NCBI GenBank assembly: GCA_002269645.1
Contig: NIVC01000068.1
Location: forward strand, 186,001 to 250,000
DNA: 64,000 bases
From: Macrostomum lignano
Lineage: Eukaryota
Direction: 5' to 3'
The position numbers and the translations under genes were made by a program. This document shows, one piece after another, positions 5,697 through 62,536 of this stretch; the first letter of the stretch is position 1, and every line of letters starts with the position of its first letter. The notes below the pieces were generated by a model, which was not told the DNA's origin, searched no databases, and saw only the letters and a program-made list of their open reading frames with translations.

Positions 5697-8377
5697 TTAG
5701 TTATTACTTCGAACAGACAGATAAATCACCAACCCGATGACAAGTAGTACAACTAGAACTATGATAGCCAATATAATCTTCTTGCGTCTAGCTGATCGCT
5801 TGTAACTAACAGCTTTGCCCAGCTGTTTGTTGCCGGTTTCTACGTGCATGACAGCCTCGCTGACGTGGTCCTCGATGCTGTCCAGCATCTCGCCTTGGTC
5901 GTGCACCATGTGGGCCAGGTCCTTGAATAGCTCGTTGATGCCTGCAAGGGAGAATTGAGATAGGGATGAAATGACAAGCCGCTGTGACGACAAGGGGATC
6001 TGGGAGGCTGGCCCAGCAACTGAGGATCTGGGAGGCTGGCCCAGCAACTGGGGATCTGGGAGGCTGGCCCAGCAACTGGGGATCTGGCAGGCTGGCCCAG
6101 CAACTGGGGATCTGGGAGGCCCAGCAACTGGGGATCTGGGAGGCTGGCCCAGCAACTAGGGATCTGGGAGGCTGGCCCAGCAACTGGGGATCTGGGAGGC
6201 CCAGCAACTGGGGATCTGGGAGGCTGGCCCAGCAACTGGGGATCTGGGAGGCCCAGCAACTGGGGATCTGGGAGGCCCAGCAACTGGGGATCTGGGAGGC
6301 TGGCCCAGCAACTGGGGATCTGGGAGGCTGGCCCAGCAACTGGGGATCTGGGAGGCTGGCCCAGCAACTGAGGATCTGAGAGGCTGGCCCAGCAACTGGG
6401 GATCTGGGAGGCTGGCCCAGCAACTGAGAATCTGGGAGCCGTGGGAGGCTGGCCCAGCAACTGAGGATCTGAGAGGCTGGCCCAGCAACTGAGGATCTGG
6501 GAGGCTGGCCCAGCAACTGAGGATCTGGGAGGCTGGCCCAGCATCTGGGGATCTGGGAGGCTGGCCCAGCAACTGAGGATCTGGGAGGCTGGCCCAGCAA
6601 CTGAGGATCTGGGAGGCTGGCCCAGCATCTGGGGATCTGGGAGGCTGGCCCAGCAACTGAGGATCTGGGAGGCTGGCCCAGCAACTGGGGATCTGGGAGG
6701 CCCAGCAACTGGGGATCTAGGAGGCTGAGGATTTGGGAAACAAGCACAATACCGGAACGCACCAACAATATCCTGCTCCAGCTGATGCAGCTGCTCTTCC
6801 CGCTGCTCAGCAGCCTGGAGATCCAGCTGCTGTTGCTGCTGCTGCTGCTGGCCGCCCAGTCTGAACGGGCTGTCTGCATCAACAAGCTGAGCAGGTTGCT
6901 GCTGCTGCTGATCAAACAGGGAGTCCAGCCCACTCCCGCCAGCTTCGCGCCGCTGTTTAGCTGCGGCCTCCTTCTCTCGGGCCTGGACGAGGCGCTGCAC
7001 CTCTTGAAAATCGCCAGCCACTTTGGTTACCTGGTTAAAGAAAACGAATTGAGCCTGATAAATTACCGAGGGAAGTGTCCAATCTCAACTATTTGAAAAT
7101 AGTTACCGTTTTTTAATCCAATCCTACTTGAATTAATCTTGCTAAAAGTTAAATTTAAATATCGAATTAAATCTAATCTCACTAGATCTAATCTAACCAA
7201 TCTTGATCCAATCTCACCCGATCTAAAACAATCACTCTGGATCTAATCTCATTAGATTTAAGAACGGTTAATCTTAATCTAATCTCACTCGATCTAAACT
7301 AACAATCTTGATCTAATCTCACTCTATCTAAACCAATCAATCTTGATCTAATCTCACTCAATCGAAACCAATCAATCTTGATCTAATCTCACTCTATCTA
7401 AACCAATCAATCTTGATCTAATCTCACTCTATCTAAACCAATCAATCTTGATCTAATCTCACTCAATAAAAATCAATCGATATTGATCTAATCTCACTCT
7501 ATCTAAACCAATCAATCTTGATCTAATCTCACTCTATCTAAACCAATAAATCTTGATCTAATCTCACTCAATCGAAACCAATCAATCTTGATCTAATCTC
7601 ACTCAATAAAAATCAATCGATATTGATCTAATCTCACTCTATCTAAACCAATCAATCTTGATCTAATCTCACTCTATCTAAACCAGTAAATCTTGATCTA
7701 ATCTCACTCAACTCACCCACTAATCTTTCAAGATAAACCAATCAATCTTGATCTAATCTCACGCAATCAAAATCAATCGATATTGATCTAATCTCACTCT
7801 ATTCAAACCAATAAATCTTGATCTAATCTCACTCTATCTAAACTAATCAATCTTGATCTAATCTCACTTTATCTAAACCAATAAATCTTGATCTAATCTC
7901 ACTCAATCGAAACCAATCAATCTTGATCTAATCTCACTCAATCGAAACCAGTCAATCTTGATCTAATCTCACTCTATCTAAACCAATCAATCTTGATCTA
8001 ATCTCACTCAATCGAAACCAGTCAATCTTGATCTAATCTCACTCTATCTAAACCAATCGAAATAAATCACATAGTAAAAGATGCAGTACACTCCGCACCT
8101 GATCCACCAAGCGATCCTTTTGCACTCGCCGCATAGCCGCAGCCATGCCCTGACACATTGGAGTCAAATCTCTCTTCAACTGTTCGGTAGCCCGCTGGCA
8201 TTGAGACAATGTTGTATGCGTCAGCGAGTGAATCTGAGAGCGCAATGCTTCGGAATCTCGGTCCGTACCAATTTTATTAGACAAATTGCGTATCTGGCCA
8301 GTGTTAGTCTGTACGCCAGTTACTAGTTGACTAATCTCGGCAGCCAGATTAGCAAAACGCTCATCGTCTGTAGACAT
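5697..8377 (-). CDS. Syntaxin-7/12-like endosomal Qa-SNARE, 3 coding exons, 263 aa
   Basis: Exons 8377-8099 (donor GTGCGG, phase 0), 7030-6763 (donor GTGCGT, phase 1), 5941-5697 (TAA); 792 nt in frame. Habc region, poly-Q linker, SNARE motif [33 protein letters not shown], C-terminal anchor RKKIILAIIVLVVLLVIGLVIYL. STX7 versus STX12 cannot be resolved by eye. Confidence 0.92.
5990..6730. repeat. Minisatellite, 28-bp unit GGGATCTGGGAGGCTGGCCCAGCAACTG with 24-bp deletion variants (syntaxin intron 2)
   Basis: Tandem units filling most of the intron. Confidence 0.95.
7170..8058. repeat. Minisatellite, 35-bp unit AATCAATCTTGATCTAATCTCACTCTATCTAAACC (syntaxin intron 1)
   Basis: Tandem units read directly. 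Confidence 0.95.
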
Positions 8378-9434
8378 CTTTGATGATTTATTGATTGTAC
8401 TAAGTGTTCAATCAGATGAATGAGTTGGAATTTTATTGCACAATAATGGCATAAAAATAGAATGGTAACTGGTTGCTATTACTTGAAGCAGTAGCATGAG
8501 ACATTTAGTTCTTTAGTTTTAAACGAATTACAATTTGCTATAATATGTTATATTATCCATAAATTTAGTGAATGAGAGCTTTGTTTTACAAAAAATGTTG
8601 CATTACAAATCATCATTAATATAAATGAATGCCTTTAGGATAGAATGATTTTAAGGTGTTTTTTCATTGCATATTTATTTATTGTCTAAATGCACAATAA
8701 TTATAAAACTGTATCTCTATTACAGTGACTTATAAAATGAAAGTTAAAGTTAAGGATCACAACTACTTTTAGGCCTATGCCAAAATATATAGACTATGCC
8801 AGAATAAATATTATAATATCTTAGCACCATTTGTATATCCCTAACAAAATTATATGTATATGTATATGTATATGTGTAAGAAAATGTATATCCCTCTTTG
8901 CTTTTATTTTTATTATATAGATACATATAAAAAATTATTTTACTAGCATAGTTTTTGTTTCTTTCTTTGGCATTTTTAGTACCTGCTCAACATCTGAAAG
9001 ACTCTGAAATACTCCCATCTGTGTCACTATATTTTGCTATAGTAAAACAATTTGTTTTAATTTACACATAAATATAGACTAGGACCTATACCTATAGGGA
9101 TATAGACCATTTTCCTTTAAGAATGTTTGTGCCATGTGGGAAGATTGGATAAAAATTGAAGCATATATCCCAATAGACCATGGGAGGGGGTCAAAATAGG
9201 TAGACTAGAGAAGGGGTTATAATGGGATTTTAGTAACTTTGTTGGCCAACAACTTGTCAACTTTGTCAAAGTTTACTTCAAGCCTGCACCTTGATTGCAA
9301 CTTCATTGTTTCTCCTACAAAAATTTTGTGCAGTAAAAATGGGGAATTTCTTACCTCAAGTGGCAATTTTATTGACAAATTATTAGTTAGACATGAATTG
9401 AATGTAAATGGCTGTTTATAAAGTCTAGACTAGA

Positions 9435-9700: not shown

Positions 9701-10080
9701 GGGGAGGGGGCATGGAATAATTGGGGGGGGGGGTGACCCGTGACCTTGGACTGAAAACCTCATCTGGCCTTCAAGTGGAAAAAGGTTGCCAACACCTAAT
9801 TTACAGGGACACCATACTTGATTCTATATAGGCCCCCTAAAATGATTTTTTTATACCAATTGTCTATAGATGTATTTTTTGTTTATTAGCCTCTTCTAAC
9901 TGTCTAGAAATATTTTTAATCAATTATATATATATATACTTTCTACAATTCTACATAGTTTCCATTCATACTAGAGTAGCCTAGTATCATGTGTGATTAG
10001 GAATTAGGAATACCTAATAGGAATTAGGTATATATGAAATCTGCATTCTACAATTACTGTTTAATGGGGTAGAGTGGCTC

Positions 10081-11452
10081 CAGTGGCGCGTCCAGGGGGT
10101 GGGGCCTGTGCCTCTCTCTACATGTATATCCCTTGGATCCTTTGAAACTTCTATCTTTGCTTCTGTTTCCTCTCTTCTCTCTCATCTTTTGTCTCTCCTG
10201 TCATCTCTTCTTTTGTCTCTTCTCTCTCCCCTCCTCTTTTGTCTCTTCTCTCTCCCCTCCTCTTTTGTCTCTTCTCCCACCTCTCTTCTCTCATGTCTTT
10301 TCTTTTATCCCTCCTTTCTCTTTTTTCTCTGCTCTCTTATTTCTTCACATTTCTCTTTTTTCTCTGCTCTCTTATCTCATCTCTTCCCTGTTCTTTCCTC
10401 TCTACTCTTTCCTCACTCTTTTCTCTCTGCTCTCCTCTCCCCCCTCTACTCATGTCTCTTCCCTTTCCTATCTTTTCTCTCCTCTCTTCTCTTCTCTCTC
10501 ATCTTATCTCATCTCCTGTCATCTCTATCACCTTATCTCTTTTTTCTTAACTTTACTCTCTCATTTCTCATTTTTCTTCTTTTATCTCTGCTTGCTCTCT
10601 TATCTTTTCTCATTTCTCTCTGCTCTCTACTCTCTTCTCTCTCCCCTCTTCTCACTCCTCACTCTCCCTTCTCTCAAAACTTTCTTCCTTTTCTCTCTCT
10701 CCTCTCTTCTTTATACTTCTCTGCTCTCATTTCCCATCTCTCCTGTCATCTCTATTCTCTCTCCTCTATTGTCTCAATCTTCTCTCCTCTATTGTCTCAA
10801 TCTTCTCTCCTATCTATCTCCTCTCTCCTTCATCTCTAATCTATACTATCATTTTTAACATCTCTCCTCTCTTCTCTATGCTTGCTTATCTCCACCCTAT
10901 AATCTCTTTTCTCCATTCTCTACTCTCTTCTCTCTCATCTCTACTCTCTTCTATCTCCTCTCTACTTTATCCTATCTACTCTCTCCTCTCTCATCTCTCC
11001 CTTTCTCACCTCTGGCTCTACTCTCTCCTCCCATTTCTCCCTCCCTATTCTCTCCCCTTCTTCTCTGCCCTCTCCTCTCAAGGTAAAAATATACACTTTG
11101 CAGAGATTAGCCAATAATTAAATGAACCAACAGAGTTTTTTGATGAGAATATGCCAGGAAAAGTAAATTATAAAGTTAAATAAATTTGTGTTTACTTTTT
11201 CTATTCAAAAATTTTCCAATTGCAAATCCTAAAAAGTGTTCTTGGGCAAAAAACATTTAGAATGTTAGTTAAATCAACTAAGCTATTGTATTCATTCTTT
11301 GTGAGATCTTTTTTGGATGTCATTTTTACTTTTTGGTAAAAATTAGCTTTTACAATAATTAAAAAACTCAATTCAAGATGTTGGCATTGCCCCTTCAGTT
11401 TTTACTGGGCCCTAACTGCCCCCCCATCTTGAAACCTCTGGACGTACCCCTG
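10081..11452. mobile_element. Non-autonomous hAT-like element with a CT-rich interior
   Basis: Imperfect TIRs CAGTGGCGCGTCCAGGGG and (reverse complement) CAGGGGTACGTCCAGAGG, 14/18 match. Flanking 8-mers AGTGGCTC (10073-10080) and AGTAGCTC (11453-11460), 7/8 match. An 8-bp TSD with CAG termini is the hAT signature. Interior ~10150-11080 is CT low-complexity. Confidence 0.7.
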
Positions 11453-11709
11453 AGTAGCTCTATATTTTGGCAAAGGCAGCCCTTTTGACCCCCTTACCCC
11501 TAGTTGCACTATAAAAATCAGTATATATATGAATATACATTTTGTATAGGCAAGTATAAACTAGGTTTTTGGTTTCTTTTTTATATTGATCAAATAAGAT
11601 CAATCAAATAGTATAGATAGACTAGCAAATTTAGAATCAAGCCAAGCTATACATATTGATATATATCTATTTAAATTATTGCAATTAGCATTAACTTTAT
11701 CTATTTTTA

Positions 11710-16755: not shown

Positions 16756-17712
16756 AGGCCTATGTGCTTTCTATTATGGCTATGATTTATCCTTTTAATC
16801 TTATGATACTTTTTAGTCATTAAAGTTTATACTAACTTAGTTGGCTATTGTTGCTTTGATTTACCACTAGTAGCTTCAGTGCCCAAGCAACAAGTTGTAT
16901 TTCTACTAAATTATACTACTAAATCATTAATTACAAATTCCAAAAAAGTATTACTAATTATCAAGGGATTCCTAGCTTAATATATGGAATTATAATCTTT
17001 CACAGCTTGATATTGCATTACACTATTTTTTGTCTAATAGCACACTTTTATTTATTAGGAATTTCTACCCATTTTCCATTTGATAGTAGCCAATTTACCT
17101 AACTCCTTACTGTGCATTATGTCTATGATTTATTCAATAAATCACTAATAAATCACTTTCTTTATAGGCAAAACATTTTAGTTTCAACCCAAAATGGTTT
17201 TGTTTTGCAATTACTACTCTTATCAGCAAACACTGCTTTAACACATCTTAATTTATAGGCACACGGCCTGCACTGCTTCTATCCAAATGACTAAAAAAGA
17301 CTAAAAATTTGTTTAGAATAAGCAAAAGTTAAAGCAGGTAAACTGAATTAACAAAGGTTAAACTGGCAAACTCCAGGTTTAAACTGAGTTAGAAAATTTT
17401 GCTTTATGCTTTTTTATACTTGTTTTAGAAGCTTCCCTTTTAGATTACACATAGTCTAATAAAATTGAATGCAGTTTACCAAAACTTAAAATTAAAATAA
17501 GTCATATGGTAAAACAAATTCTGTAAAACAAATAATTTTTGGTGGAAATTTAAAATATAGAAAACTAAAATCTTCTAGTTAAAGTATTATTGGCTAGCAA
17601 GCACTAAATACAATGGATTCCTTTATCTTCCTATTTTAGCTTTATTTATAGTTTTAAAAGAATAAATTTCTGTTACTGATAGTAGCTATTAAACTTTTTT
17701 TCATGTTCCAAA

Positions 17713-20700
17713 ATGTCATCAAATCAACTTGGTGCTCCAAGCAGTGGTGCCAATAGCAAAGTGGTCAGCAAATTCTATAAATTTGGCCAACCCCAGGCAG
17801 CAGAGAAGCAGATGCTGCAGCAGCAGTGCCGCAAACGATTTACTGGCACTCAGTCGCATCCTCGTAAGCAGCCTTTGTTCTCTAGCAAATCGCCTTATTC
17901 AAAGCCAGTTGGAATTAGCAAGCCACCGCCAGGCCACCAGCTGCATCATTTTACCGATTCTCCAGCTAGAAAACAACCTCGAACAGTTTTTCGATTCGAT
18001 TTGGATAAAGATTCGCCTAAATTGTTGTTGGAATCTCAACAGACTGGAACTGAAAATGTAACCAATTCGGAACCAGATTCTTGCCCGGCTGCAAATGGTC
18101 GGTCTTCTTCTTCAAACAGAGTCCAATCTGATGTGAACGAACTTGAAGACGCCGAGTTGGAGCCTTCTAATCAAAGCGAAAGTCATGGCCAGCAGCAACA
18201 GCTTAGCAACAATGCTAATATGAATTCTTGCAATGAATTTTTTGGTCTGCCAATGTTTGTTAAAGATTTGTTGAAAAAGCACAAAGGCATTGATAAGTTG
18301 TACGGTAAGTTTCTTGAGGTATTATTTTTCTATCCTCTTTATTAAATAACAATGTCGACAACTTCATCCATTGTCCAAAGAATCGGCCAATAATCGGTCA
18401 CTTTTTTGTCCACTTCTAAGAATCGGCTATTGTCCACTTCTAAGAATCGGCTATTGTCCACTTCTTAGAATCGGCTATTGTCCACTTCTAAAAGAATGGG
18501 TCATTGTCCACTTCTAAAATTATGGACCATCGCTTCTAAAAATTGGCCATTGTCCACTTCCAAGAATCGGCCATTGTTCACTTCTTACAATCGGCGATTG
18601 TCCAATTTTAAAAATCGGCCATTGTCCAATTTTAAGAATCGGCCATTGTCCAATTTTAAGAATCGGCCATTGTCCAATTTTAAGAATCCTCCATTGTCCA
18701 CTTTTAAGAATCGGCCATTGTCCAATTTTAAGAATCGGCCATTGTCCACTTCTAAGAATCGGCCATTGTCCTCTTCTAAGAATCGGCCATTGTCCTCTCT
18801 CCTAAGAGTCGGCCATTGTCCACTTCTAAGAATCGGCCATTGTCCACTTCTAAGAATCGGCCATTGTCCACTTTTAAGAATCGGCCATTGTCCTCTTCTA
18901 AGAGTCGGCCATTGTCCACTTCTAAGAATCGGCCATTGTCCACCTCTAGGAATCGGCCATTGTCCACCTAAGAATCGGCCATTGTCCACCTAAGAATCGG
19001 CCATTGTCCACCTAAAAATCGGCCATTGTCCACCTAAGAATCGGCCATTGTCCAACTCGAAGAATTGGCAATAGTCCAATATCCAGAGTCTAAGAGTTGC
19101 TTCAACCCCCCCCCCTCAACGCCCTCAGACTGGCAGACAGACTGCCTGTCCATGCCAGCAGTTCAGTCCGGCGGCAACTTGGTGTACAGCTTGCCAACAA
19201 GCGGTGGCAAAACATTGGTAGCGGAACTGCTCATACTCCAACAGTTGCTAGTGAACGGTCGAGATGCATTATTCGTGTTGCCGTTTGTCTCAATAGTACA
19301 GGAGAAAGTTCTATCAACTAGCGCCCTAGGACTCGAGCTGGGGTTCCTAGTGGAAGAATACGCTCACCATAAGGGTCGACTACCACCCGTGAAGCGTAGA
19401 AATCGAAAAACGTTATACATCGCCACTATTGAGAAGGCTCTGACCCTGGTTAACAGTCTGATTGAAGAGAAACGAATCGAAGAATTGGGTATTGTAGTTG
19501 TGGACGAGTTGCACATGATTGGTGAATCTGGACGGGGCTCTACATTGGAGTCCTTAATTACTAAGGTGCTAATATTATTTAGATTTTGCAATCTTGCCTG
19601 GAATAGTTCAGATATGAATAGCAGATTACTTCTGCGTTATTCTTGAAAAGTTGCAGTTTAGCTAGCCGAAAAAATCGCCCATAGACTATCTGGAGAATCG
19701 CTCATAGACAGGAGAATCGCCCATAGATAGAAAACTATCCAGAGGATCACCCATAGACTATCCAGAGAATCGCCCATAGAATATCCAAAGAATCGCCCAT
19801 AGAATAACCAGAGAATCGCCAATAGAGTATCCAGAGAATCGCCCATAGACTATCCAGAGAATCACCCATAGACTATCCAGAGGATCACCCATTAACTATC
19901 TAGAGAATCGCCCATAGAGTATCCAGAGAATCGCCCATAGAATAACCATAGAATCGCCCATAGAGTATCCAAAGAATCGCCCATAGAATAACCAGAGAAT
20001 CGCCAATAGAGTATCTAGAGAATCGCCCATAGAGTATCCAAAGTATCGCCCATAGAATAACCAGAGAATCGCCAATAGAGTATCCAGAGAATCGCCCATA
20101 GACTATCCAGAGAATCGCCCATAGAATATCCAGAGAATCGCCCATAGAGTATCCTGAGAATTGCCTATAGACTACCAGAAAAATCGCCCATAGACTATCC
20201 AGAGAATCGCCCATAGACTAACGGGAGAATCGCCCATAACCTATCCAGAGGATCACCCATTAACTATCTAGAGAATCGCCCATAGAGTATCCAGAGAATC
20301 GCCCATAGAATAACCATAGAATCGCCCATAGAGTATCCAAAGAATCGCCCATAGAATAACCAGAGAATCGCCAATAGAGTATCTAGAGAATCGCCCATAG
20401 AGTATCCAAAGAATCGCCCATAGAATAACCAGAGAATCGCCAATAGAGTATCCAGAGAATCGTCCATAGACTATCCAGAGAATCGCCCATAGAATATCCA
20501 GAGAATCGCCCATAGAGTATCCTGAGAATTGCCTATAGACTACCAGAAAAATCGCCCATAGACTAACGGGAGAATCGCCCATAACCTATCCAGAGGATCA
20601 CCCATTAACTATCTAGAGAATCGCCCATAGAATATCCAGAGAATCGCCCATAGAGTATCCAGAGAATCGCCTATAGAGTATCCAGAGAATCGCCCATAGA

Positions 20701-23700
20701 CTGTCCAGAGAATCGCCCATAGACTATCCAGAGAATCGCCCATAGACTATCCAGAGAATCGCCCATAGACTAACGGGAGAATCGCCCATAGACTATCTGG
20801 AGAACCGCCCATAGACTATCCGGAGAATCGCCCATAGACTATCTGGAGAACCGCCCATAGACTATCTGGAGAATCGCCCATAGACTATCTGAAGAATCGC
20901 CCATAGACTATCCAGAGAATAACCCATAGACTAACCAGAGAATAACCCATAGACTATCCAGAAACCCTCATAGACTATTTAGAGAATCGCCCATAGACTA
21001 TCCACAGAATCGCCCACAGACTATCAATAATTCACCTTTAGGTATAAAAAATCACTTAAGTATAACTTACGAGTACTCTTATGTCTAGCTGACTACTACG
21101 AGTAATAAACATGTTAATTAAGCAGTATAAATAAAATTTCTTTGATCAGATTCGATTTTGTTCGCCGCGGAGCCGCCTGGTCGGCATGAGCGCCACTCTC
21201 AGCAACTTGGACCAGCTGGCCTCGTGTTTGAAGGCCTCTCTATTCACTGGAAATTTCCGTCCAGTTCAACTGAAAGAATACGTGAAAATTGAAGATACAA
21301 TTTATCGATTAGTAACTAATAGCCCGCAGTCGAATTTGGACGAGTCTTCTTCTAGTATGACGTTTGTTAGGCGGCTGAATCACGATAGTTTTGTTGGTCG
21401 ATTGTATCCGGATAAAGCTAGCCGAGCTGCGGATCCTGACCTGCTGTGCGGACTTGTGCTGGAGGTGAGCATGCGCGTCTTGTAATCTCATTAGTAATCC
21501 AAATGCAATCCGAAACTCAAATTCTATAATCCCAAGATCCCTATGATCCCAAAGGTCCCTATGATCCCAAGATCACAATGATCCCAAGATCCCTATTATC
21601 TTAAGATCCCTATCATTCCAAGATCCCTATGATCCCAAAGGTCCCTATGATCCCAAGATCACAATGATCCCAAGATCCCTATTATCTTAAGATCCCTATC
21701 ATTCCAAGATCCCTATGATCCCAAGATCACAATGATCCCAAGATCCCTATTATCTTAAGATCCCTATCATTCCAAGATCCCTATGATCCCAAAGGTCCCT
21801 ATGATCCCAAGATCACAATGATCCCAAGATCCCTATTATCTTAAGATCCCTATCATTCCAAGATCCCTATGATCCCAAAGGTCCCTATGATCCCAAGATC
21901 ACAATGATCCCAAGATCCCTATTATCTTAAGATCCCTATCATTCCAAGATCCCTATGATCCCAAGATCACAATGATCCCAAGATCCCTATTATCTTAAGA
22001 TCCCTATCATTCCAAGATCCCTATGATCCCAAGATCCCTAAGATCCCAATGATCTTTTTGATCCCAAGATCCCTATGATCTTTTTGATCCCAAGATCCCT
22101 ATGATCTTTTTGATTCCAAGATCCCTATAATCCCAAGATCCCTGTGATCTCAAGATCCCACTGATCCCATGATCCCTATGATCATAAGATCCCGATGATC
22201 CCAAGATTCCTATTATCCTAAGATCCCTATTATCCCAAGATCCCAAGATCCATATGATCCCAAGATCCCTATTATCCCAAGATCCCAAGATCCATATGAT
22301 CCCAAGATCCCTATTATCCCAAGATCACTATTATTCTAAGATCACAATAATTCCAACGATCCAAATGATCCCAAGATGCCATTGATCCCAATATTTCTGT
22401 GATTCCGTATTCCTATAAAATTATAGAATCCTATAATCTATATGACCCCCGTGATTCGGAATCCCAGTTTGTTATTGATCCCAGTTAGGCCTAGAATTAA
22501 TCTAATCGCAAATTAAAATTTATCGTTATTTCATCTACTTTAAGTAGTAAATCCACTTCACCGCCAGGTCATCCCAGCCAAGTCCTGTCTGGTGTTTTGC
22601 CAGTCAAAAAAGTCCTGCGAATCCGTGGCCAACCTCTTAGCCAAGTATCTGCCGCGTCGCCTAGCAACGGCTTCTGGCGTTGGCGATGACGTCTATCGGA
22701 GAAGACAGGTTAATTGATTATTTCAGTTAGCGCATACTTTCCCGAGCCTTCAGGTTTAGCTGTCCCAGTTCCTCCCAATCTTCAGGCTCAGTTCCTCTCA
22801 ATCTTCAGGCACAGTTCCTCCCAATCTTCAGGCACAGTTCCTCCCAATCTTCAGGCTCAGTTCCTCCCAATCTTCAGGCACAGTTCCTCCCAATCTTCAG
22901 GCTCAGTTCCTCCCAATCTTCAAGCACAGTTCCTCCCAATCTTCAGGCACAGTTCCTCCCAATCTTCAGGCACAGTTCCTCCCAATCTTCAGGCACAGTT
23001 CCTCCCAATCTTCAGGCACAGTTCCTCCCAATCTTCAGGCACAGTTCCTCCCAATCTTCAGGCACAGTTCCTCCCAAGCTTCAGGCACAGTTCCTCCCAA
23101 TCTTCAGGCTCAGTTCCTCTCAATCTTCAGGCTCAGTTCCTCCCAATCTTCAGGCTCAGTTCCTCTCAATCTTCAGGCTCAGTTCCTCTCAATCTTCAGG
23201 CACAGTTCCTCCCAATCTTCAGGCACAGTTCCTCCCAACCTTCAGGCACTATTCAAGCGGCTTCGCACAGAGGATTGCGACACGGGCGGCGGTAGCGGCA
23301 GCAACGGAAGCAGCGGTCGTTTTTGCCCTGTGCTGGCGGCCACCCTGCCTTTCGGCGTGGCCTATCACCACAGCGGACTGACAGCCGAGGAGCGTCGCTG
23401 CCTCGAAGATGCCTTCGCCGAAGGCACCCTGTGCGTCATCTGCTGCACCTCCACCCTTGCAGCCGGTGTCAACCTGCCAGCTAAACGAGTCATTGTCCGT
23501 TCGCCAATGGTTGGTGCAGCGTTTATTGGCTTGGCCCAGTACCTTCAGATGGTGGGCAGAGCCGGTAGGGCCGGTCTGGACACTGAGGGCGAGAGTGTCA
23601 CCATTGTGCCTGGCAGGGACCGGCTGCGGTTTATGCAGATGCGCTCGGACACAGGCATGCTTAAGTTAGTGTTTATTGTTTATGTCAGATCTAGAGACTA

Positions 23701-26700
23701 GCGAGTCAGATCTAGAGACTAGCGAGTCAGATCTAGAGACTAGCGAGTCAGATCTAGAGACTAGCGAGTCAGATCTAAAGACTAGCGAGTCAGATCTAGA
23801 GACTAATTAGTCAGATCTAGAGACTGGTTAGTCAGATCTAGAGACTGGTTAGTCAGATCTAGAGACTAATTATTCAGATCTCAAGACTTGTTTTTCAGAT
23901 CCAGAGACTGGTTAGTCCGGTCTAGAGACTGGTTAGTCCGGTCTAGAGACTGGTTAGTCAGATCTATAGAATGGTTAGTCAGATCTATAGACTGGTTAGT
24001 CAGATCTAGAGATTTAAGAAATTACAATCGAGCTGTCAATCATTACATACGACTCAAACAGGTGTCGCAGCCGATTGCACGAAGGCGCCGCTCTGCAGTC
24101 GCTAATCCTGAGCAGCCTCACACTGGGCCTTGCTCGCTGCAGGGACGACATCACCAGCTTGCTTGCCTGCAGCTTCTGGGCTGTGCAAGCTCAGCCGGGC
24201 GAATTGGCCGAAGCGATCGACACCTGCCTGACTCGATTGGACGCCCTGAAGTTGCTGGGCTCTGCGCCAGCATCCAAGGCTGGTCAGGAGCAGCAGTGAG
24301 TGCGCCTTGCAGATGCTGGGCTCTGCCTCTATTGTTTTATTTTGGTAGCTCACGCGGAGCTTTTTCCGGTTTGAATGTTTACCTTAGCAACGCAAACTGG
24401 TGCTTTGTGAGCTCGAATATTCACCTTAGGAACTCAAACTTAAGGCTAATCAGTTCGACTGTTTACCTTAGCAACGCAAACTAATGCTTTTTCAGTTCGA
24501 TTATTTACCTTAGCAACGCAAACTAAGGCTTAATCAGTTTGACTGTTTACCTTAGCAACGCAAACTAATGCTTTGTCATTTCGAATTTTTACCTTAGCAA
24601 CGTAAACTGGTGCTTAGTCAGTTCGATTGTTTACATTTAGCAACACAAACTGATAGTTAATCAGTTCGATTGTTTACCTTAGCAACGTAAACTGGTGCTT
24701 AGTCAGTTCGATTGTTTACATTTAGCAACACAAACTGATAGTTAATCAGTTCGATTGTTTACCTTAGCAACGTAAACTGGTGCTTAGTCAGTTCGATTGT
24801 TTACATTTAGCAACACAAACTGATAGTTAATCAGTTCGATTGTTTACCTTAGCAACGAAAATTGGTGCTTAGTCACTTCGAATGTTTACCTTAGCAACTC
24901 AAACTGATGCTTAGTCAATTCAAATGTTTACCTTAGCAACTCAAACTGATGCTTAGTCAGTTTCAGTATTTACCTTAGCAACAGGAACTAATGCTTAATC
25001 AGTTTGAATGTTTACCTTAGAAACGCAAACTGATGCTTTGTCAGTTAATCTATCTACCTTAGCAACACAAGAGAAATTTAATCAGCTCAGATATTTTAGT
25101 TTTCGTTAAGTTTCGCATAAAAATAGAAAAACTCTAGAAAGAATTGCAATAACCAAAAAATATTTCACAACTTGTCCGAATTTCTATCATATACGAAAGC
25201 TAAAGCTCCAATTGCTTGCTTTTTAGTTTGGAAAATGAATGTAAAAAAACAAGTAAAAAATCATCACATGTGGCCGTGGACCCTGAAGCGGTACACGCAG
25301 GTGTAGTCCGGCTGGCCATGGTTGTTGCCAACCTCCAGCAGGACGTATTTAAACACAGCCGATTCCATCGCCGCCTCGCTGTCCACGATGTGAAAAGTTT
25401 GCGTAGGCGGTCCCGACTCTGCGTCGTAGGCAAAGCAGCCCAGCCGGCGTCCAGTCTTGAAGTCGCACGCCTTGGTCAGTCCGTAGACGCAGAACCGCTT
25501 CGGCGCGCTGGCCACAGAGTTGTTGAACGACTGCAGCCGGCTGATGTGGTCGATGCTGACTGCCGACACGCGAATCGGCCGGCTGAGCTGCACGACCGCC
25601 CGGCCTGGGAAACCGGCGAATGACCAGCAGTCTCCCGGCTGGAGACCCGACGGGCCGCTGATGATTGTCTCTGGATCTGGCAGTTGCCGCCACCAGCGCT
25701 GCCATCGCTGCCACCAGCTTGTCAAGCCGCAGTTGCCATTGTGAGCCAGTAGCACGGCTGCACCGCCGCTCTTCAGCGCATAGTCGGGCAGCTGATCCGC
25801 TTCAACAGTTGAGCCTTGCTGACCAGCCGATCTGACAAACTGTCCACACCGACCATTCAATGCTGATGCCGTCTGTTCAAGCCGACGTAGCTGTACAGAT
25901 TGCTTTTCAAACCTGGCTTCGGTGACAGATTTTAAACTGTCCAGTTGAGCTTGAAGTTTCTCGTGCTCCTTAGAGCGATGCCGATCCCTAGTGATTTGTT
26001 CACTCGTGCACTTCTCTGTCCGCTTGGCTAAGTCTTTGACTTGACCGTCAAGTTTGTCCAGATCCTTCTGCAGCTGCTGGATGCTGCCAGTCTGAATACT
26101 GCTGTCACAGTTTCGTCCCGCGAGTTGTTGAGACCTTGATGCAACAGATTTGCGTTAATCCATGGATGTAAAAACTTGTTTAACAGGGACTGTATATCAA
26201 TACTTCAGATCTTTCAGTGTACTCTAGCCGCATCTCTTTTAGACACTCAAGTGAAGCTTTAAATGCAAATACTCAACGTAATACTATAAGCCCCTTACAT
26301 TCCATGGTTCAAAGCGACAAAAATATTACAAAAACTTGCTTTTAACATTATCTACGACTTATTGATTGCCTCTTAACCAGAAAGGATAGATTAGCCTTAA
26401 CAACAGCTGAATTGGCTTGCAGTTTGTTGGAGACGGCAGCTCGGTATTGCGAATTATATCTCTATATCAGATATAATTGAAAAAATATTGATATTTAACT
26501 TGCCTGTGCTGCGGAGGAATATCTACACCCGGTGTCATATTCATTCTGAGATTGCCGTCCAAAGAGGAATCCAGATTGTCATCATAGATGCCGTCATGGG
26601 TAGCAGCGGTCTTCCAGGCGACCAAAATAATAGACAGGACAATAACTGACAGCAGTAACATTTGCATCCAACTTCGATTGCGTCGAACATTGATATTAGT

Positions 26701-29700
26701 CCTGCTATTGATAGTAATAACATTGTTGCGACTGCGACTTTTGCTGGATGATTGTCCATTATTCTTTCTTTGGTTGGCACTTGGCGAATTAGTTAAACTT
26801 TCGTTACTTAATGTTGTGGTGTTGGTAGCAGTTTTCGAGCCACCGCGTGCCGAAGAGCTTGCCGGAGAAGACAGTCCAGCGTATGACGATAACCCACTAT
26901 CTTGGTGAACGTTGCGCAGTGGGGTACTCGCTTTACGGAGTGGCATACCTGGTGGCGTCTTAATCACTGGCAATTTTTCATTGCTTACGAGTACATCATC
27001 GCCTGCTGCTGATTTTGTGTAGACTCTGTGCTGTAGCACCCGCGCCGCTTGCTGCTGTGCCGGATTCGGGGTTGTGACGACGCTGTCGCACACGCACCAG
27101 CCGATGCGCTCGCAGAATGAGCGCAGTATTCTGCCAGCTGGCAAATTATAAACTGTCGGCATTTTCCGCTTTGGTACGGCGGCTGTCTTTAACGTTGGGC
27201 TCATTCTTATAGATTGCTGCGCTTTCTATGAAATTGCCAACCAAAGTTATCGGAACGCGATTCGAAACTTGCCGTCTTATTCACAGCTTGTTAGTTAGCT
27301 TGGCCATAAACAACTTCCTTCGTGTAGGTTAATAACTTGAATGCATGCTATTTATAGCTACATTGATTGCCCCAAAGTGAACGTGTTTAGTACATTTAGT
27401 CATATGTTGATATATGTGTAAAAGCTAAATTTTGGCTAAATTAAGAAAAATTTGTGCCTAAATTAAAGTGACCTACCTTTGGAACCAACCAATTGACGTT
27501 TATATTATGTTCATTTTCACCATTATTATTAATTACTACAGATAGTTGTGATTAAAGAATGAAATAAAAAAACTTAAATTAAAAAAATGTTCCTAAAGCG
27601 AATCGATTATTTACCTTAGCAACGCAAAGGATGCTAAGGCGCATCGATTGTTTACCTTAGCAACACAAATGATGCTAAAGCGCATCGATTGTTTACCTTA
27701 GCAACGCGAATAATGCCAAGGCGCATCGATTGTTTACCTTAGCAACGCAGAGGATGCTAAGGCGCATCGATTGTTTACCTTAGCAACACAAATGATGCTA
27801 AAGCGCATCGATTGTTTACCTTAGCAACGCAGAGGATGCTAAGGCGCATCGATTGTTTACCTTAGCAACACAAATGATGCTAAAGCGCATCGATTGTTTA
27901 CCTTAGCAACGCGAATAATGCCAAGGCGCATCGATTGTTTACCTTAGCAACGCGAATAATGCCAAGGCGCATCGATTGTTTACCTTAGCAACGCAGAGGA
28001 TGCTAAGGCGCATCGATTGTTTACCTTAGCAACACAAATGATGCTAAAGCGCATCGATTGTTTACCTTAGCAACGCGAATAATGCCAAGGCGCATCGATT
28101 GTTTACCTTAGCAACGCAAAGAATGCCAAAGCGAATCGATTGTTTACCTTAGCAACAGACCTTACCTCAGCTCGAATATTTATCATGGCAATAAAATATT
28201 TACAAATTCGAATTCGCAGATCGGCGCCTCAGCCGCAGTCCTCACCATCCGCTAGCCTGACTGCCAGCCAACTTGCCGTCGCCTGCGTCAAAGGCTGCAT
28301 CGAACCTGAACGAGCAAACAGCGTCCTGGCCGAGCTCAATCAGGCCCTGGGCAGCCTGCAGCTGGACTCCTACGTGCACCTGCTCTGGCTGGTTGTGCCG
28401 CCAGAATATCTGCCAGCTTCGTCGTCATCGTCAACGTCAGCGTCCTACGGCGACCTCGCCGGCCTGGCAGATTCGGCGCGCCGATTGCCGGCACTGTTGG
28501 ACTCGTTGGCGCCCGCTGAACGGCGCGCAATCGAAGCCTGCGCCGGCCTGGGCGAAGCCATGGCTATGCGGCTGGCGGCTGGCCGAGCGCCGACAGCTGA
28601 GCAGCTGGTTTGTTTCCTGGAATATCTGCCCGATTTTCCTGGGATTTGTTTCCTGGAATATCTGCCCGATTTTCCTGGGATTTGTTTCTTGGAATATCTG
28701 CCCGTTTTTCCTGGGATTTGTTTCTTGGAATATCTGCCCGATTTTCCTGGGATTTGTTTCTTGTAATATCTGCCCGATTTTCCTGGGATTCGTTTCTTGG
28801 AATATCTGCCCGTTTTTTCTGGGATTTGTTTCTTGGAATATCTGCCCGGTTTTCCTGGGATTTGTTTCTTGGAATATCTGCCCGTTTTTCCTGGGATTTG
28901 TTTCTTGGAATATCTGCCCGATTTTCCTGTGATTTGTTTCTTGGAATATCTGCCCGATTTTCCTGGGATTTGTTTCTTGGAATATCTGCCCGATTTTCCT
29001 GGGATTTGTTTCTTGGAATATCTGCCCGATTTTCCTGGGATTTGTTTCTTGGAATATCTGCCCGATTTTCCTGGGATTTGTTTCTTGGAATATCTGCCCG
29101 ATTTTCCTGGGATTTGTTTCTTGGAATATCTGCCCGATTTTCCTGGGATTTGTTTCCTCTATTTCAATAGAATAAAGATTTCTGTTTCTTGGGATGTGTA
29201 ACCTGTTTCCTAGAATGGCTACCCGTTTTCTTAGAATATGTACTCCGTTTCTTAGAATGGCTACTCTTTTTCTTGGAATATGTCGCCGGCTTTTTTCGAA
29301 TAGCTATAATCTTACCGAAATAAGTTAGTTTTACAATAATTTTTATGTAATAATTTCCTAAAAATCTATTTGATTTCTTGGAATCTTTACCTGATTTCCT
29401 GGAATCAATATACTAAAAATTATCTATCTGGTTTCCTGGAATCTCTACCTTGACTTCCCAAAAAATCTCTACCTTGTTTCCTGGAATTCCGCCTGATTTC
29501 CTGAAATTTCTACCTGATTTCCTGAAATTTCTACCTGATTTCCTGGAATCTCCACCTGATTTCCTGTTTTTTCTACCTGATTTTTAGAATCTCTACCTGA
29601 TTTCCTGGAATCTCTATCTAATTTCCCAGAATCTCTATCTGATTTCCTAGAATCTCTATCTGATTTCCTGGAGTTTCTACCTTATTTCCTGGAATCTCTA

Positions 29701-30923
29701 TCTGATTTCCTGGAATCTCTACCTGATTTCCTGGAATCTCTACCTGATTTCCTGGAATCTCTATCTTATTTCCTGAAATTTCTATCTTATTTCCTGGAAT
29801 TTCTACCTTATTTCCTCGAATCTCCGCTTGATTTTCTGGAATCTCTGCCGGATTTTCTCGAATCTCTGCACTACCTACTTTCCTAGAAATTTCTGAAATG
29901 TCTTTATCTACCTGTTTTATCAAATATTTACCCTTTTGCAACAGCTAGTATCCTCTTTACCCGAAGCTAAACTTTGATTATTTTTTTCCAATTTCTTTCC
30001 CCCGCCCGTCAGCCTCGCCTCCGTCGCGCCCAGCTCACTTTGGTGCTGCTCTGCCTTTGGCGTGGCGACTCCGTCTGGCGCGTTAGCGATCGGTTCAGCC
30101 TCACCAGGGGCTTCGTCCAGCAGCTGCTGACCTCCGCCGCTGCCACGGCCTCCGGGCTCGCCCAGTTTGTGCAGCCGTTCGACCAGTTGTGGGGCCTGCA
30201 GCGACTGTTGCCAGATTTTTCCCAGCGACTGGCGCACTGCGTATCTCCTGAGCTGCTGCCGCTGATGCAGCTGCCGGCTGTGCGGCGGGGCCGGTGAGTC
30301 TGGAATTCTCGAGTTGTCCACCCTCCCAGATCCTCAGGGATTAAGCTACCAGCCTCCCAGATCCTCAGGGATTAACCTACCAGCCTCCCAGATCCTCAGG
30401 GGTTAAGCTACCAGCCTCCCAGATCCTCAGGGGTTAAGCTACCAGCCTCCCAGATCCTCAGGGGTTAAGATACCAGCCTCGTTTATTACCAATGAGTGTC
30501 AGTCCCAAGGCGCAGAGATTGTACATGCCTGACCATGAGAAAGTTATGGGCGCTGTACACCCTGTGCGAGCGCGTGCCTTCGCTGGCTCTGGGCTGACTG
30601 CCGTCTTGATTTTGCCAAACTGCACCCGCAGGGCCCGCCAGCTGTACCAGGCGGGCTTCACCAGCCTGTCGAAGATCGCGGCGTCCAACGCCCGTGAGCT
30701 GTCGGCCGGAGTCGTCCATCTGCCAGTCGGTCAGGCCCGCCGCATGGTGGCCGCCGCCCGGATGTTGGTTCAAGATGCGGCCGAATCTTTGCAGTCTGAG
30801 GCTCGCGACCTACTCGACGGTGTCGCTGGCAAACTGCAGCCGCAGCCGCCCCAACCTGATGGCACTTTGACGCCGTTGAAGGCTGCTAATGGATCTTGCG
30901 ACGATTTGTTTGACTCTTCCTGA
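17713..30923 (+). CDS. HELQ: HELQ (HEL308/Mus301) Ski2-like 3'-5' DNA helicase, 9 exons, 1032 aa
   Basis: Exons 17713-18304, 19129-19565, 21150-21464, 22568-22708, 23246-23664, 24062-24295, 28220-28607, 30013-30293, 30632-30923; all GT-AG, phases consistent, 3099 nt. Motifs [64 protein letters not shown], then winged-helix/ratchet and HhH (ARQLYQAGF). No polymerase domain follows. Confidence 0.95.
18410..19055. repeat. Minisatellite, 24-bp unit AAGAATCGGCCATTGTCCACTTCT (HELQ intron 1)
   Basis: Tandem units read directly. Confidence 0.95.
19670..21020. repeat. Minisatellite, 23-bp unit ATAGACTATCCAGAGAATCGCCC (HELQ intron 2)
   Basis: Tandem units with an internal 368-bp higher-order duplication. 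Confidence 0.95.
21510..22400. repeat. Minisatellite, ~17-bp unit CCCAAGATCCCTATGAT with higher-order blocks (HELQ intron 3)
   Basis: Tandem units read directly. Confidence 0.93.
22765..23249. repeat. Minisatellite, 23-bp unit TTCCTCCCAATCTTCAGGCACAG (HELQ intron 4), last copy overlapping the exon 5 acceptor
   Basis: About 20 units, ending ...ccttcag|GCAC at 23245/23246. Confidence 0.95.
23685..24012. repeat. Minisatellite, 21-bp unit GTCAGATCTAGAGACT(AGCGA/GGTTA) (HELQ intron 5)
   Basis: Tandem units read directly. Confidence 0.93.
24377..25075. repeat. Degenerate 42-43-bp minisatellite with core GTTTACCTTAGCAAC (5' part of HELQ intron 6)
   Basis: Conserved core recurring at 42-43-bp intervals. 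Confidence 0.9.
25264..27204 (-). CDS. SUN-domain (Sad1/UNC-84) inner nuclear membrane protein, ~523 aa, nested antisense in HELQ intron 6
   Basis: Exon A 27204-26504: basic S/T-rich N-terminus and [18 protein letters not shown]. Intron AG|GCAAGT...catcaAG (26503-26135, phase 2). Exon B 26134-25264: open frame with coiled coil ([21 protein letters not shown]), then SUN motifs [56 protein letters not shown]. Probable 5'UTR intron 27476-27226 (AAG|GTAGGT...tttcatAG). Confidence 0.88.
27600..28155. repeat. 41-bp minisatellite with core GTTTACCTTAGCAAC and internal CCTTAGCA/TGCTAAGG stem (3' part of HELQ intron 6)
   Basis: Period measured from ATCGAT at 27602 and 27643. Confidence 0.93.
28608..29880. 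repeat. HELQ intron 7: 36-bp unit GATTTGTTTCTTGGAATATCTGCCCGATTTTCCTGG (28608-29157), then a related 21-bp unit TTTCCTGGAATCTCTACCTGA (~29375-29880)
   Basis: Tandem units; the first array starts at the donor GT. Confidence 0.93.
30322..30480. repeat. 31-bp minisatellite CCTCCCAGATCCTCAGGGATTAAGCTACCAG (HELQ intron 8)
   Basis: About 5 units; reverse complement of the array at 60155-60607. Confidence 0.93.

Positions 30924-41507: not shown

Positions 41508-62536
<21,029 letters not shown>

Follow-up and report, generated by a model that had tools for sequence, protein, structure and literature searches.

A two-exon SUN-domain gene nested antisense within the sixth intron of HELQ in Macrostomum lignano

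Introduction

Nested antisense genes form a common and well-known class and are generally regarded as insertions into long introns. In Drosophila, about 6% of all genes lie inside introns (PMC3786989). Here we describe such a nest in Macrostomum lignano, in which a gene encoding a SUN-domain protein lies within an intron of HELQ, the gene for a helicase POLQ-like protein. Among the relatives of the guest, SUN1 and SUN2 (UNC-84, klaroid; SUN2 structures 4DXT, 4FI9 and 6WMG) are the canonical inner-nuclear-membrane proteins of the linker of nucleoskeleton and cytoskeleton (LINC) complex. The window analyzed is a stretch of 64 kb of contig NIVC01000068.1 (positions 186,001 to 250,000, assembly GCA_002269645.1), and all positions below are counted from its first letter. 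An earlier note, made from the letters of this DNA, had placed an intact gene with a transmembrane (TM) segment, a coiled coil and a SUN domain in HELQ intron 6, and had proposed that the envelope gene and the repair gene might be co-regulated or mutually exclusive in expression. The analysis indicates that this is very probably a genuine, transcribed SUN gene of two coding exons, LINC-type in its product, whose nesting is a lineage-specific accident.

Results

Both gene models are base-exact

A splice-aware reconstruction of the host gene joined nine exons (3105 nt) into a protein of 1034 aa that equals PAA91939.1 residue for residue. The guest, spliced from two exons on the minus strand, gave a protein of 523 aa, and exact-sequence look-up found it to be identical throughout to PAA91940.1. 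The coding sequence (CDS) of the SUN gene lies entirely within one HELQ intron and on the opposite strand, which makes the two a nested pair (Table 1). Exon 6 of HELQ ends at 24295, where the letters on the two sides of the boundary (marked here by a slash) are GAGCAGCA/GTGAGTGC and the donor is GCA/GTGAGT with its GT at 24296-24297. The first base of exon 7 is 28220, behind the acceptor TTCGCAG/ATCG, whose AG occupies 28218-28219. The two junctions are in phase 2 and the joined frame reads ...GQEQ-Q-SAPQ.... Because they are phase-compatible at both ends, 24296-28219 are the exact limits of the intron. All eight HELQ introns are GT-AG, and the other seven are 338-1584 nt long. The placement of an intact gene with TM segment, stalk and SUN domain antisense in intron 6 thus holds to the base.

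Intron 6 contains two long minus-strand open reading frames (ORFs), the second of which carries the SUN domain (E = 7e-30). When alternative splice models were tried, only one of the 71 frame-preserving donor/acceptor pairs, CACAG/GCAAGT with CATCAAG/GT, reproduced the annotated protein. The earlier description of the SUN introns as short and array-free is right for the intron that is there (369 nt, 0% array), and needs correcting in its plural, since only one coding-region intron is established. This one coding-region intron has a GC donor with the full AG/GCAAGT consensus (26498-26503), identical in the duplicate, whereas the introns of HELQ are all GT-AG. Outside the coding region, reading of the sequence located an ATTAAA motif bordering array A (near 25078-25083) and an acceptor-like TTTCATAG 22 nt upstream of the SUN ATG; the 5' flank may serve as a promoter or in trans-splicing.

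GenBank has listed both genes, with their overlapping coordinates, from the 2017 Mlig_3_7 annotation onward. The record of NIVC01000068.1, which matches the window at 100% over 21.9 kb, lists the 1034-aa HELQ gene as enclosing the SUN gene, with adjacent protein accessions, and UniProt names the guest product 'SUN domain-containing protein'. None of the papers in the collection searched speaks of the nested SUN gene or of the nest arrangement.

Transcription of the two genes

The Mlig_3_7 annotation was built from a genome-guided transcriptome of stranded RNA-seq data (StringTie with the --rf setting, TACO and a boundary caller) and used no ab initio prediction; it left out antisense transcripts that were at least 5-fold weaker than the other strand (PMC5730564). 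Since the SUN and HELQ models both equal this strand-aware, transcript-derived annotation exactly, it follows that the minus strand is transcribed here and that HELQ exon 6 is spliced to exon 7. In this indirect way, the minus-strand transcription and the exon 6-7 splicing on which the earlier note relied are both borne out.

Three contigs carry the nest

The assembly is redundant, and the sequenced line carries duplicated chromosomes (PMC5730564). The order exon 6/array/SUN/array/exon 7 is repeated on NIVC01001001.1, which carries copy g1, and at the end of NIVC01004323.1, which carries copy g2; these sister SUN copies have 524 aa and 438 aa, respectively. On NIVC01001001.1 a 524-aa Sad1_UNC gene is likewise called inside HELQ on the opposite strand. 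These copies bear on the suspicion that the nest is an artefact of assembly or annotation, for example a chimeric contig placing an unrelated gene within HELQ, for which one could cite the highly repetitive genome with its redundant assembly (PMC5730564) and the 47% of the window that is tandem array. Three separate contigs share the order, however, and the whole of intron 6 aligns between copies collinearly and unbroken, over 3475 bp at 93%, so that an artefact can be given practically no credence.

Comparison of the window copy with g1 gave identities of 98.3% for the SUN CDS, 97.0% for the SUN intron, 95.9% for the 3' flank and 87% for the 5' flank, and the SUN splice sites are the same in both. 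The 26 differences in the CDS comprise 10 synonymous and 16 non-synonymous ones. Expressed as the ratio of non-synonymous to synonymous rates (dN/dS), this is 0.49 for the whole CDS (P = 0.065), 0.24 for exon 2, which encodes the stalk and the SUN domain (P = 0.037), and 0.75 for exon 1 with the N-terminal region (P = 0.38; one-sided binomial throughout). The sign is weak but consistent, and suggests that the luminal part is under constraint. Copy g2 (positions 9744-11686 of locus L004, on NIVC01004323.1) differs from g1 at 2 of 1944 positions.

Table 1. Coordinates of the nested pair, its flanking arrays and the neighboring t-SNARE gene in the window
Feature	Position	Strand	Remarks
HELQ host gene	17707-30923	+	BOX15_Mlig027672g1 = Mlig027672.g1; PAA91939.1; helicase POLQ-like
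HELQ coding exons 1-5	17707-18304, 19129-19565, 21150-21464, 22568-22708, 23246-23664	+	
HELQ coding exons 6-9	24062-24295, 28220-28607, 30013-30293, 30632-30923	+	
HELQ exon 6	24062-24295	+	winged-helix/HTH_61 part
HELQ intron 6	24296-28219	+	GT-AG, phase 2, 3924 nt; sixth of eight and the longest; encloses the whole SUN gene
HELQ exon 7	28220-28607	+	linker and start of POLQ_helical domain
SUN gene	ATG 27204, stop 25264	-	two coding exons; BOX15_Mlig015518g3 = Mlig015518.g3; PAA91940.1; 523 aa
SUN 5' flank	27205-27584	-	degenerate array B units from about 27462 onward
SUN exon 1	26504-27204	-	residues 1-233 and two bases of codon 234; low-complexity N-terminal region and TM segment
SUN intron	26135-26503	-	369 nt, GC-AG (CACAG/GCAAGT...CATCAAG/GT), phase 2, tandem arrays 0%
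SUN exon 2	25264-26134	-	residues 234 (part)-523 and stop; predicted stalk helix ~25825-26094; SUN domain ~25267-25803
SUN 3' flank	25071-25263	-	putative 3' untranslated region (UTR); UTR ends absent from the annotation
Array A	24369-25070		42-nt unit, 16.6 copies (Tandem Repeats Finder, TRF); on the 3' side of the SUN gene
Array B	27585-28156		41-nt unit, 14 copies (TRF); satellite family and orientation as array A
t-SNARE gene, SNARE domain and TM segment	5700-6155	-	
t-SNARE gene, Syntaxin_2 N-terminal domain	8051-8407	-	

The guest protein

The SUN domain (PF07738) is matched at residues 391-522 with 102.6 bits (E = 2e-29; cut-off 22 bits), and human and mouse SUN2 structures match residues 345-522 at E ~1e-30, SUN1 at 5e-25. 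A TM segment is found at residues 178-198 (26611-26673), with a Kyte-Doolittle mean of 2.3 over 19 residues. A low-confidence AlphaFold2 monomer model has one helix over residues 171-204, another over 248-337, and beta strands over 360-522; residues 248-337 form one continuous predicted helix with a predicted local distance difference test score (pLDDT) of 57-64. The model was too poor for a fold search, and the sequence match to the solved SUN2 structures was used instead. An alignment of the nested SUN and 14 relatives has 23 invariant columns, among them C403, C513 and the terminal YRFRVHG; C403 (in GDCW) and C513 (in YTCVY) align with the SUN2 disulfide cysteines in GNCW and YTCIY.

The first 240 residues had no detectable relatives among 1.8 billion representative proteins in an exhaustive HMMER search. 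Within them, residues ~22-79 (27060-27150) are predicted as one helix and three beta strands with a pLDDT of 50-62 and could, with low confidence, be a small folded module.

A word-indexed search returned vertebrate SUN3 as the top named matches, with 39-40% identity over the domain, and missed M. lignano's own proteins. The exhaustive search found no relative above 50% identity and 34-44% identity to any SUN domain. Its ranking is nearly flat, with the 1003-aa SUN protein of M. lignano (~34-35%), fish SUN1-like and SUN2 proteins, insect SUN3 and an Artemia klaroid-like protein close together. Such flatness across the SUN families leaves orthology to SUN3 unsupported. In a neighbor-joining tree of SUN domains, the sampling of which does not include human SUN4 and SUN5, the nested SUN stays outside the vertebrate SUN3 clade (98% bootstrap without it) and does not group with the other M. 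lignano SUN; its distances to most of the SUN domains in the tree are nearly equal (0.62-0.67). Together, tree and ranking speak against SUN3 orthology. In the phylogeny called for in the earlier note, the nested SUN thus appears, among the families sampled, as a long-branch SUN paralogue of ambiguous affinity, not a SUN3 orthologue.

These features also bear on whether the gene still works. The intact ORF, and GC-AG splice sites identical in two diverged copies, argue against an account in which the nested SUN is a decaying or non-functional duplicate, transcribed and no longer selected as a LINC component. So do the retention of all family-invariant SUN residues, a CDS better conserved than the SUN intron and both flanks, the low dN/dS of exon 2, and the probable strong germline enrichment of its putative transcript in the part of the published table searched (see below). 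Decay could still find some footing in the overall dN/dS, which is not significantly below 1, in the value for exon 1, in a frameshift in copy g2, in an atypical KASH-lid, and in a long orphan branch with at most 35% identity to the other SUN protein of the species. On balance we consider it very improbable.

A germline lead for the SUN gene

In the portion of the published tables searched, a list of germline candidates contains two PF07738 transcripts (Grudniewska et al., eLife 2016, PMC5173321). The longer of them, of 3880 nt, has SUN1 as best human match and a Pfam score of 100.8 (PMC5173321), which is exactly the score of the 1003-aa M. lignano SUN protein. The other, RNA1509_20484, has 1570 nt, a PF07738 score of 101.8, SUN2 as best human match and a fish protein as best UniRef match (PMC5173321). 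The nested SUN protein scores 102.1-102.6 for PF07738, has SUN2 as best solved structure, and counts fish proteins among its best exhaustive matches. Judged by its length, its Pfam score and its best human match, RNA1509_20484 probably comes from the nested SUN gene. Its log fold change is 4.5 between juvenile and intact G2/M cells and -8.5 between intact and head-only G2/M cells, within the range of the testis-confirmed genes in that table (PMC5173321). Through this putative transcript, the nested SUN gene is probably germline-enriched.

In the parts of the PMC5173321 tables searched HELQ was not found, nor were HELQ expression data. The terms Mlig015518, Mlig027672, Mlig033108, SUN and HELQ had no match in the searched parts of other published supplementary tables. 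Of the germline theme proposed for the pair, one indirect lead on the SUN side is therefore what stands.

The host protein

Pfam finds DEAD, Helicase_C, HTH_61 and POLQ_helical domains in the HELQ product and no polymerase domain. It shares this with the HELQ/Hel308/Mus301 helicases, which combine DEAD, Helicase_C, a winged helix and POLQ_helical and have no polymerase domain. The plus-strand ORF upstream of 24296 matches HTH_61, and the plus-strand ORF downstream of 28219, taken alone, has no Pfam match. In a homologue search with concatenated exons the best named matches were animal 'helicase POLQ-like' proteins, hundreds of them, at 40-44% identity; the closest match to this approximate query model was an M. 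lignano 'hypothetical protein' (94%). UniProt also holds A0A1I8HQX6, an M. lignano 'DNA polymerase theta' of 1608 aa that shares a 90% cluster with the 1034-aa HELQ, and is probably no true POLQ but the outcome of an older, merged prediction.

The nest is absent from four other HELQ loci

The HELQ loci of a tapeworm (Hymenolepis diminuta), an annelid (Capitella teleta), a damselfly (Ischnura elegans) and an amphioxus (Branchiostoma floridae) were compared with that of M. lignano. No nested gene is called in any of the four, and tblastn with the SUN protein as query gave no match in them up to E = 1. The nest was seen in the M. lignano duplicate contigs only, and the conservation in related genomes that the earlier note had in mind was not found in the four loci compared. 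Some HELQ intron positions are common to M. lignano and the compared species (residues 199/200 and 936/937). The position of intron 6, around residue 715, lies in a poorly conserved linker, across which a single Ischnura alignment block runs. It suggests that intron 6 may itself be lineage-specific.

The absence from these loci is also one of the points that tell against a functional nest, in which antisense SUN transcription would couple the two genes through shared germline activation or through mutually exclusive interference. In favor of such coupling, SUN and HELQ families both have germline roles elsewhere, the probable SUN transcript RNA1509_20484 is germline-enriched in the part of the table searched, and the arrangement has been kept in both diverged copies. 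But those copies are just 2-7% apart, so that retention of the nest shows nothing past recent duplication. HELQ expression data did not turn up in the tables searched, nested antisense genes are common, as the Drosophila figure illustrates (PMC3786989), and the flanking arrays point to chance insertion. We therefore judge functional nesting unlikely. The proposed pair of envelope and repair genes, co-regulated or mutually exclusive, finds no backing in a nest missing from four loci, a guest that is not a SUN3 orthologue and flanks that look like those of an insertion. Our reading does not imply that the SUN gene is functionally coupled to HELQ, and we see no sign that the two genes cooperate.

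A gene between two arrays of one family

Arrays A and B, on the two sides of the SUN gene, are built from clearly homologous units and share a 16-mer core, TGTTTACCTTAGCAAC, whose 27 occurrences (0.02 expected) are all on the plus strand and all within the two arrays, with no other in the window. Both arrays decay towards the SUN gene. Tandem arrays cover 48-89% of the seven other HELQ introns, 32% of intron 6, and 0% of the SUN gene and the SUN intron; the HELQ exons are array-free as well. When the SUN segment (~2.4-2.5 kb) is subtracted from intron 6, ~1.4 kb remains, 90% of it array, and resembles the neighboring introns. As one minisatellite family stands on both SUN flanks, insertion into an array-filled intron is suggested, and insertion of the SUN segment into an intronic minisatellite appears the simplest reading of the sequence.

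Two particular routes were rejected: a transposon-borne gene, because the SUN segment has no terminal inverted or long direct repeats, and a retrogene, because a spliceosomal GC-AG intron is kept in both copies. At only ~34% identity, even the nearest SUN paralogue in the genome is too distant for a recent parent copy.

Arrays in the other introns

By comparison with the array content of the window, simple and tandem repeats make up 15% genome-wide in the assembly paper (PMC5730564). The other HELQ introns have their own unit family each (17, 21, 23, 24, 31 and 36 nt), starting 1-107 nt past the donor. Intron 4 (22709-23249, including the first bases of exon 5) consists almost wholly of 21 tandem copies of the 23-nt CAGTTCCTCCCAATCTTCAGGCA. 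All of these copies are strong 3' splice-site motifs, and the last one, TTCCTCCCAACCTTCAG/GCAC, is the acceptor used for exon 5; the real acceptor thus comes after ~20 near-identical decoys at a spacing of 23 nt. In intron 7 (28608-29156) a 36-nt array begins at the first intron bases, and the donor context CTG/GTTTGTTTCCTGG recurs 14 times with at most 4 mismatches, its GT changed to AT in later units. Introns 4 and 7 suggest, on sequence pattern, that introns here grew via tandem duplication of splice-site-adjacent sequence; the pattern is seen at only 2 of the 16 HELQ splice sites.

The core of arrays A and B is itself acceptor-like in HELQ sense (TTTACCTTAG/CAAC) and donor-like in SUN sense (GCTAAG/GTAAAC), so that intron 6 contains 27 cryptic splice-site-like motifs. 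A search of the literature on array-filled introns in Macrostomum found nothing specific, and an Rfam scan of the whole window found no RNA family.

Neighboring genes

Upstream of HELQ, on the minus strand at ~5700-8407, lies a gene for a syntaxin-type t-SNARE whose introns are also array-filled. Downstream, an exon for calcium-binding EGF domains (EGF_CA/EGF_3, E ~1e-10; 49723-49935, plus strand), likewise surrounded by arrays, belongs to a multi-exon gene.

Discussion

The layout of a TM segment, a long helix and a SUN domain makes the nested SUN most likely the inner half of a LINC bridge, where it would bind a KASH partner in the perinuclear space. The N-terminal ~177 residues would presumably be nucleoplasmic, followed by one TM helix, a predicted luminal helix of ~90 residues that in the model is of the kind that trimerizes in SUN1 and SUN2, and a C-terminal SUN beta-sandwich. 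The protein is probably used mainly in the germline. As for the nest itself, a compact gene-bearing segment of ~2.4-2.5 kb may have come to lie in a pre-existing, array-filled HELQ intron, splitting one minisatellite into the two flanking arrays, and the nest would afterwards have been copied during the recent duplication of this genome.

Several points weigh against this interpretation. The selection signal is weak, being drawn from 26 differences in total, with a dN/dS of 0.75 in exon 1. One of the two differences between copies g2 and g1 is the loss of 1 nt from g2 at coding position 134. The resulting frameshift, which accounts for the annotated 438-aa product with its start at Met87, could be a real allele or decay, or an error of long-read assembly. 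Transcription and splicing are read indirectly, from the annotation method and not from inspected read alignments, and RNA1509_20484 is probably the nested gene by its characters, as far as the table searched goes, rather than by sequence proof. The 'coiled coil' is a predicted long helix in a low-confidence model (mean pLDDT 47.6). The counterpart of the KASH-lid is similar in length and strongly diverged in sequence, being unusually rich in W and R, and the nearest cysteine (in NGNC) stands three alignment positions off the cysteine by which SUN2 cross-links KASH. As to insertion, decay at the edges of the arrays leaves no basis for a test of phase, and no terminal inverted repeats, long direct repeats or target duplication were found to bound the SUN segment.

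It may also be asked whether SUN transcription in germ cells could tune the output of HELQ or the splicing of its exons 6 and 7, or whether both genes share a germline chromatin domain. If the SUN gene tuned HELQ, chromosome tethering at the nuclear envelope and recombination repair would be linked at one locus; we hold this to be a long shot. The same goes for a weaker form of the idea, in which intron 6 itself would have been created or greatly enlarged when the SUN segment arrived with its satellite in the poorly conserved HELQ linker. With the nest read as an accident of the lineage, the finding is real and ordinary, it matters little beyond bookkeeping, and its written description is the sole novelty. 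It does mean that M. lignano has a second, short and fast-evolving SUN-domain gene. Since this gene is probably germline-enriched, it is a reasonable candidate for studies of meiotic chromosome movement or of the elaborate sperm. The nest also offers a clean local example of a gene within a minisatellite-filled intron.

Compared with SUN1 and SUN2, the nested SUN has the same order of N-terminal region, TM segment, predicted long helix and SUN domain, the disulfide cysteines and the terminal YRFRVHG. It differs in that its N-terminal 240 residues are without detectable relatives, its lid is W/R-rich and its identity to any SUN domain is only 34-44%; it is also about half as long as the other SUN protein of M. 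lignano (523 aa versus 1003 aa). With the vertebrate testis SUN proteins (SUN3; SUN4/SPAG4 and SUN5) it has in common a short chain, a brief stalk and a probable germline enrichment, but it falls outside the SUN3 clade. As in the nested pairs of Drosophila and vertebrates, such as 2mit inside timeless2 (PMC3786989), the whole of a compact guest lies antisense within one intron, the longest of its host, and the two products are unrelated. The M. lignano nest differs from those in that its guest is bracketed by two minisatellite arrays of the same family, in an intron otherwise made of tandem repeats, and that it exists in duplicate, in a genome that became polyploid recently.

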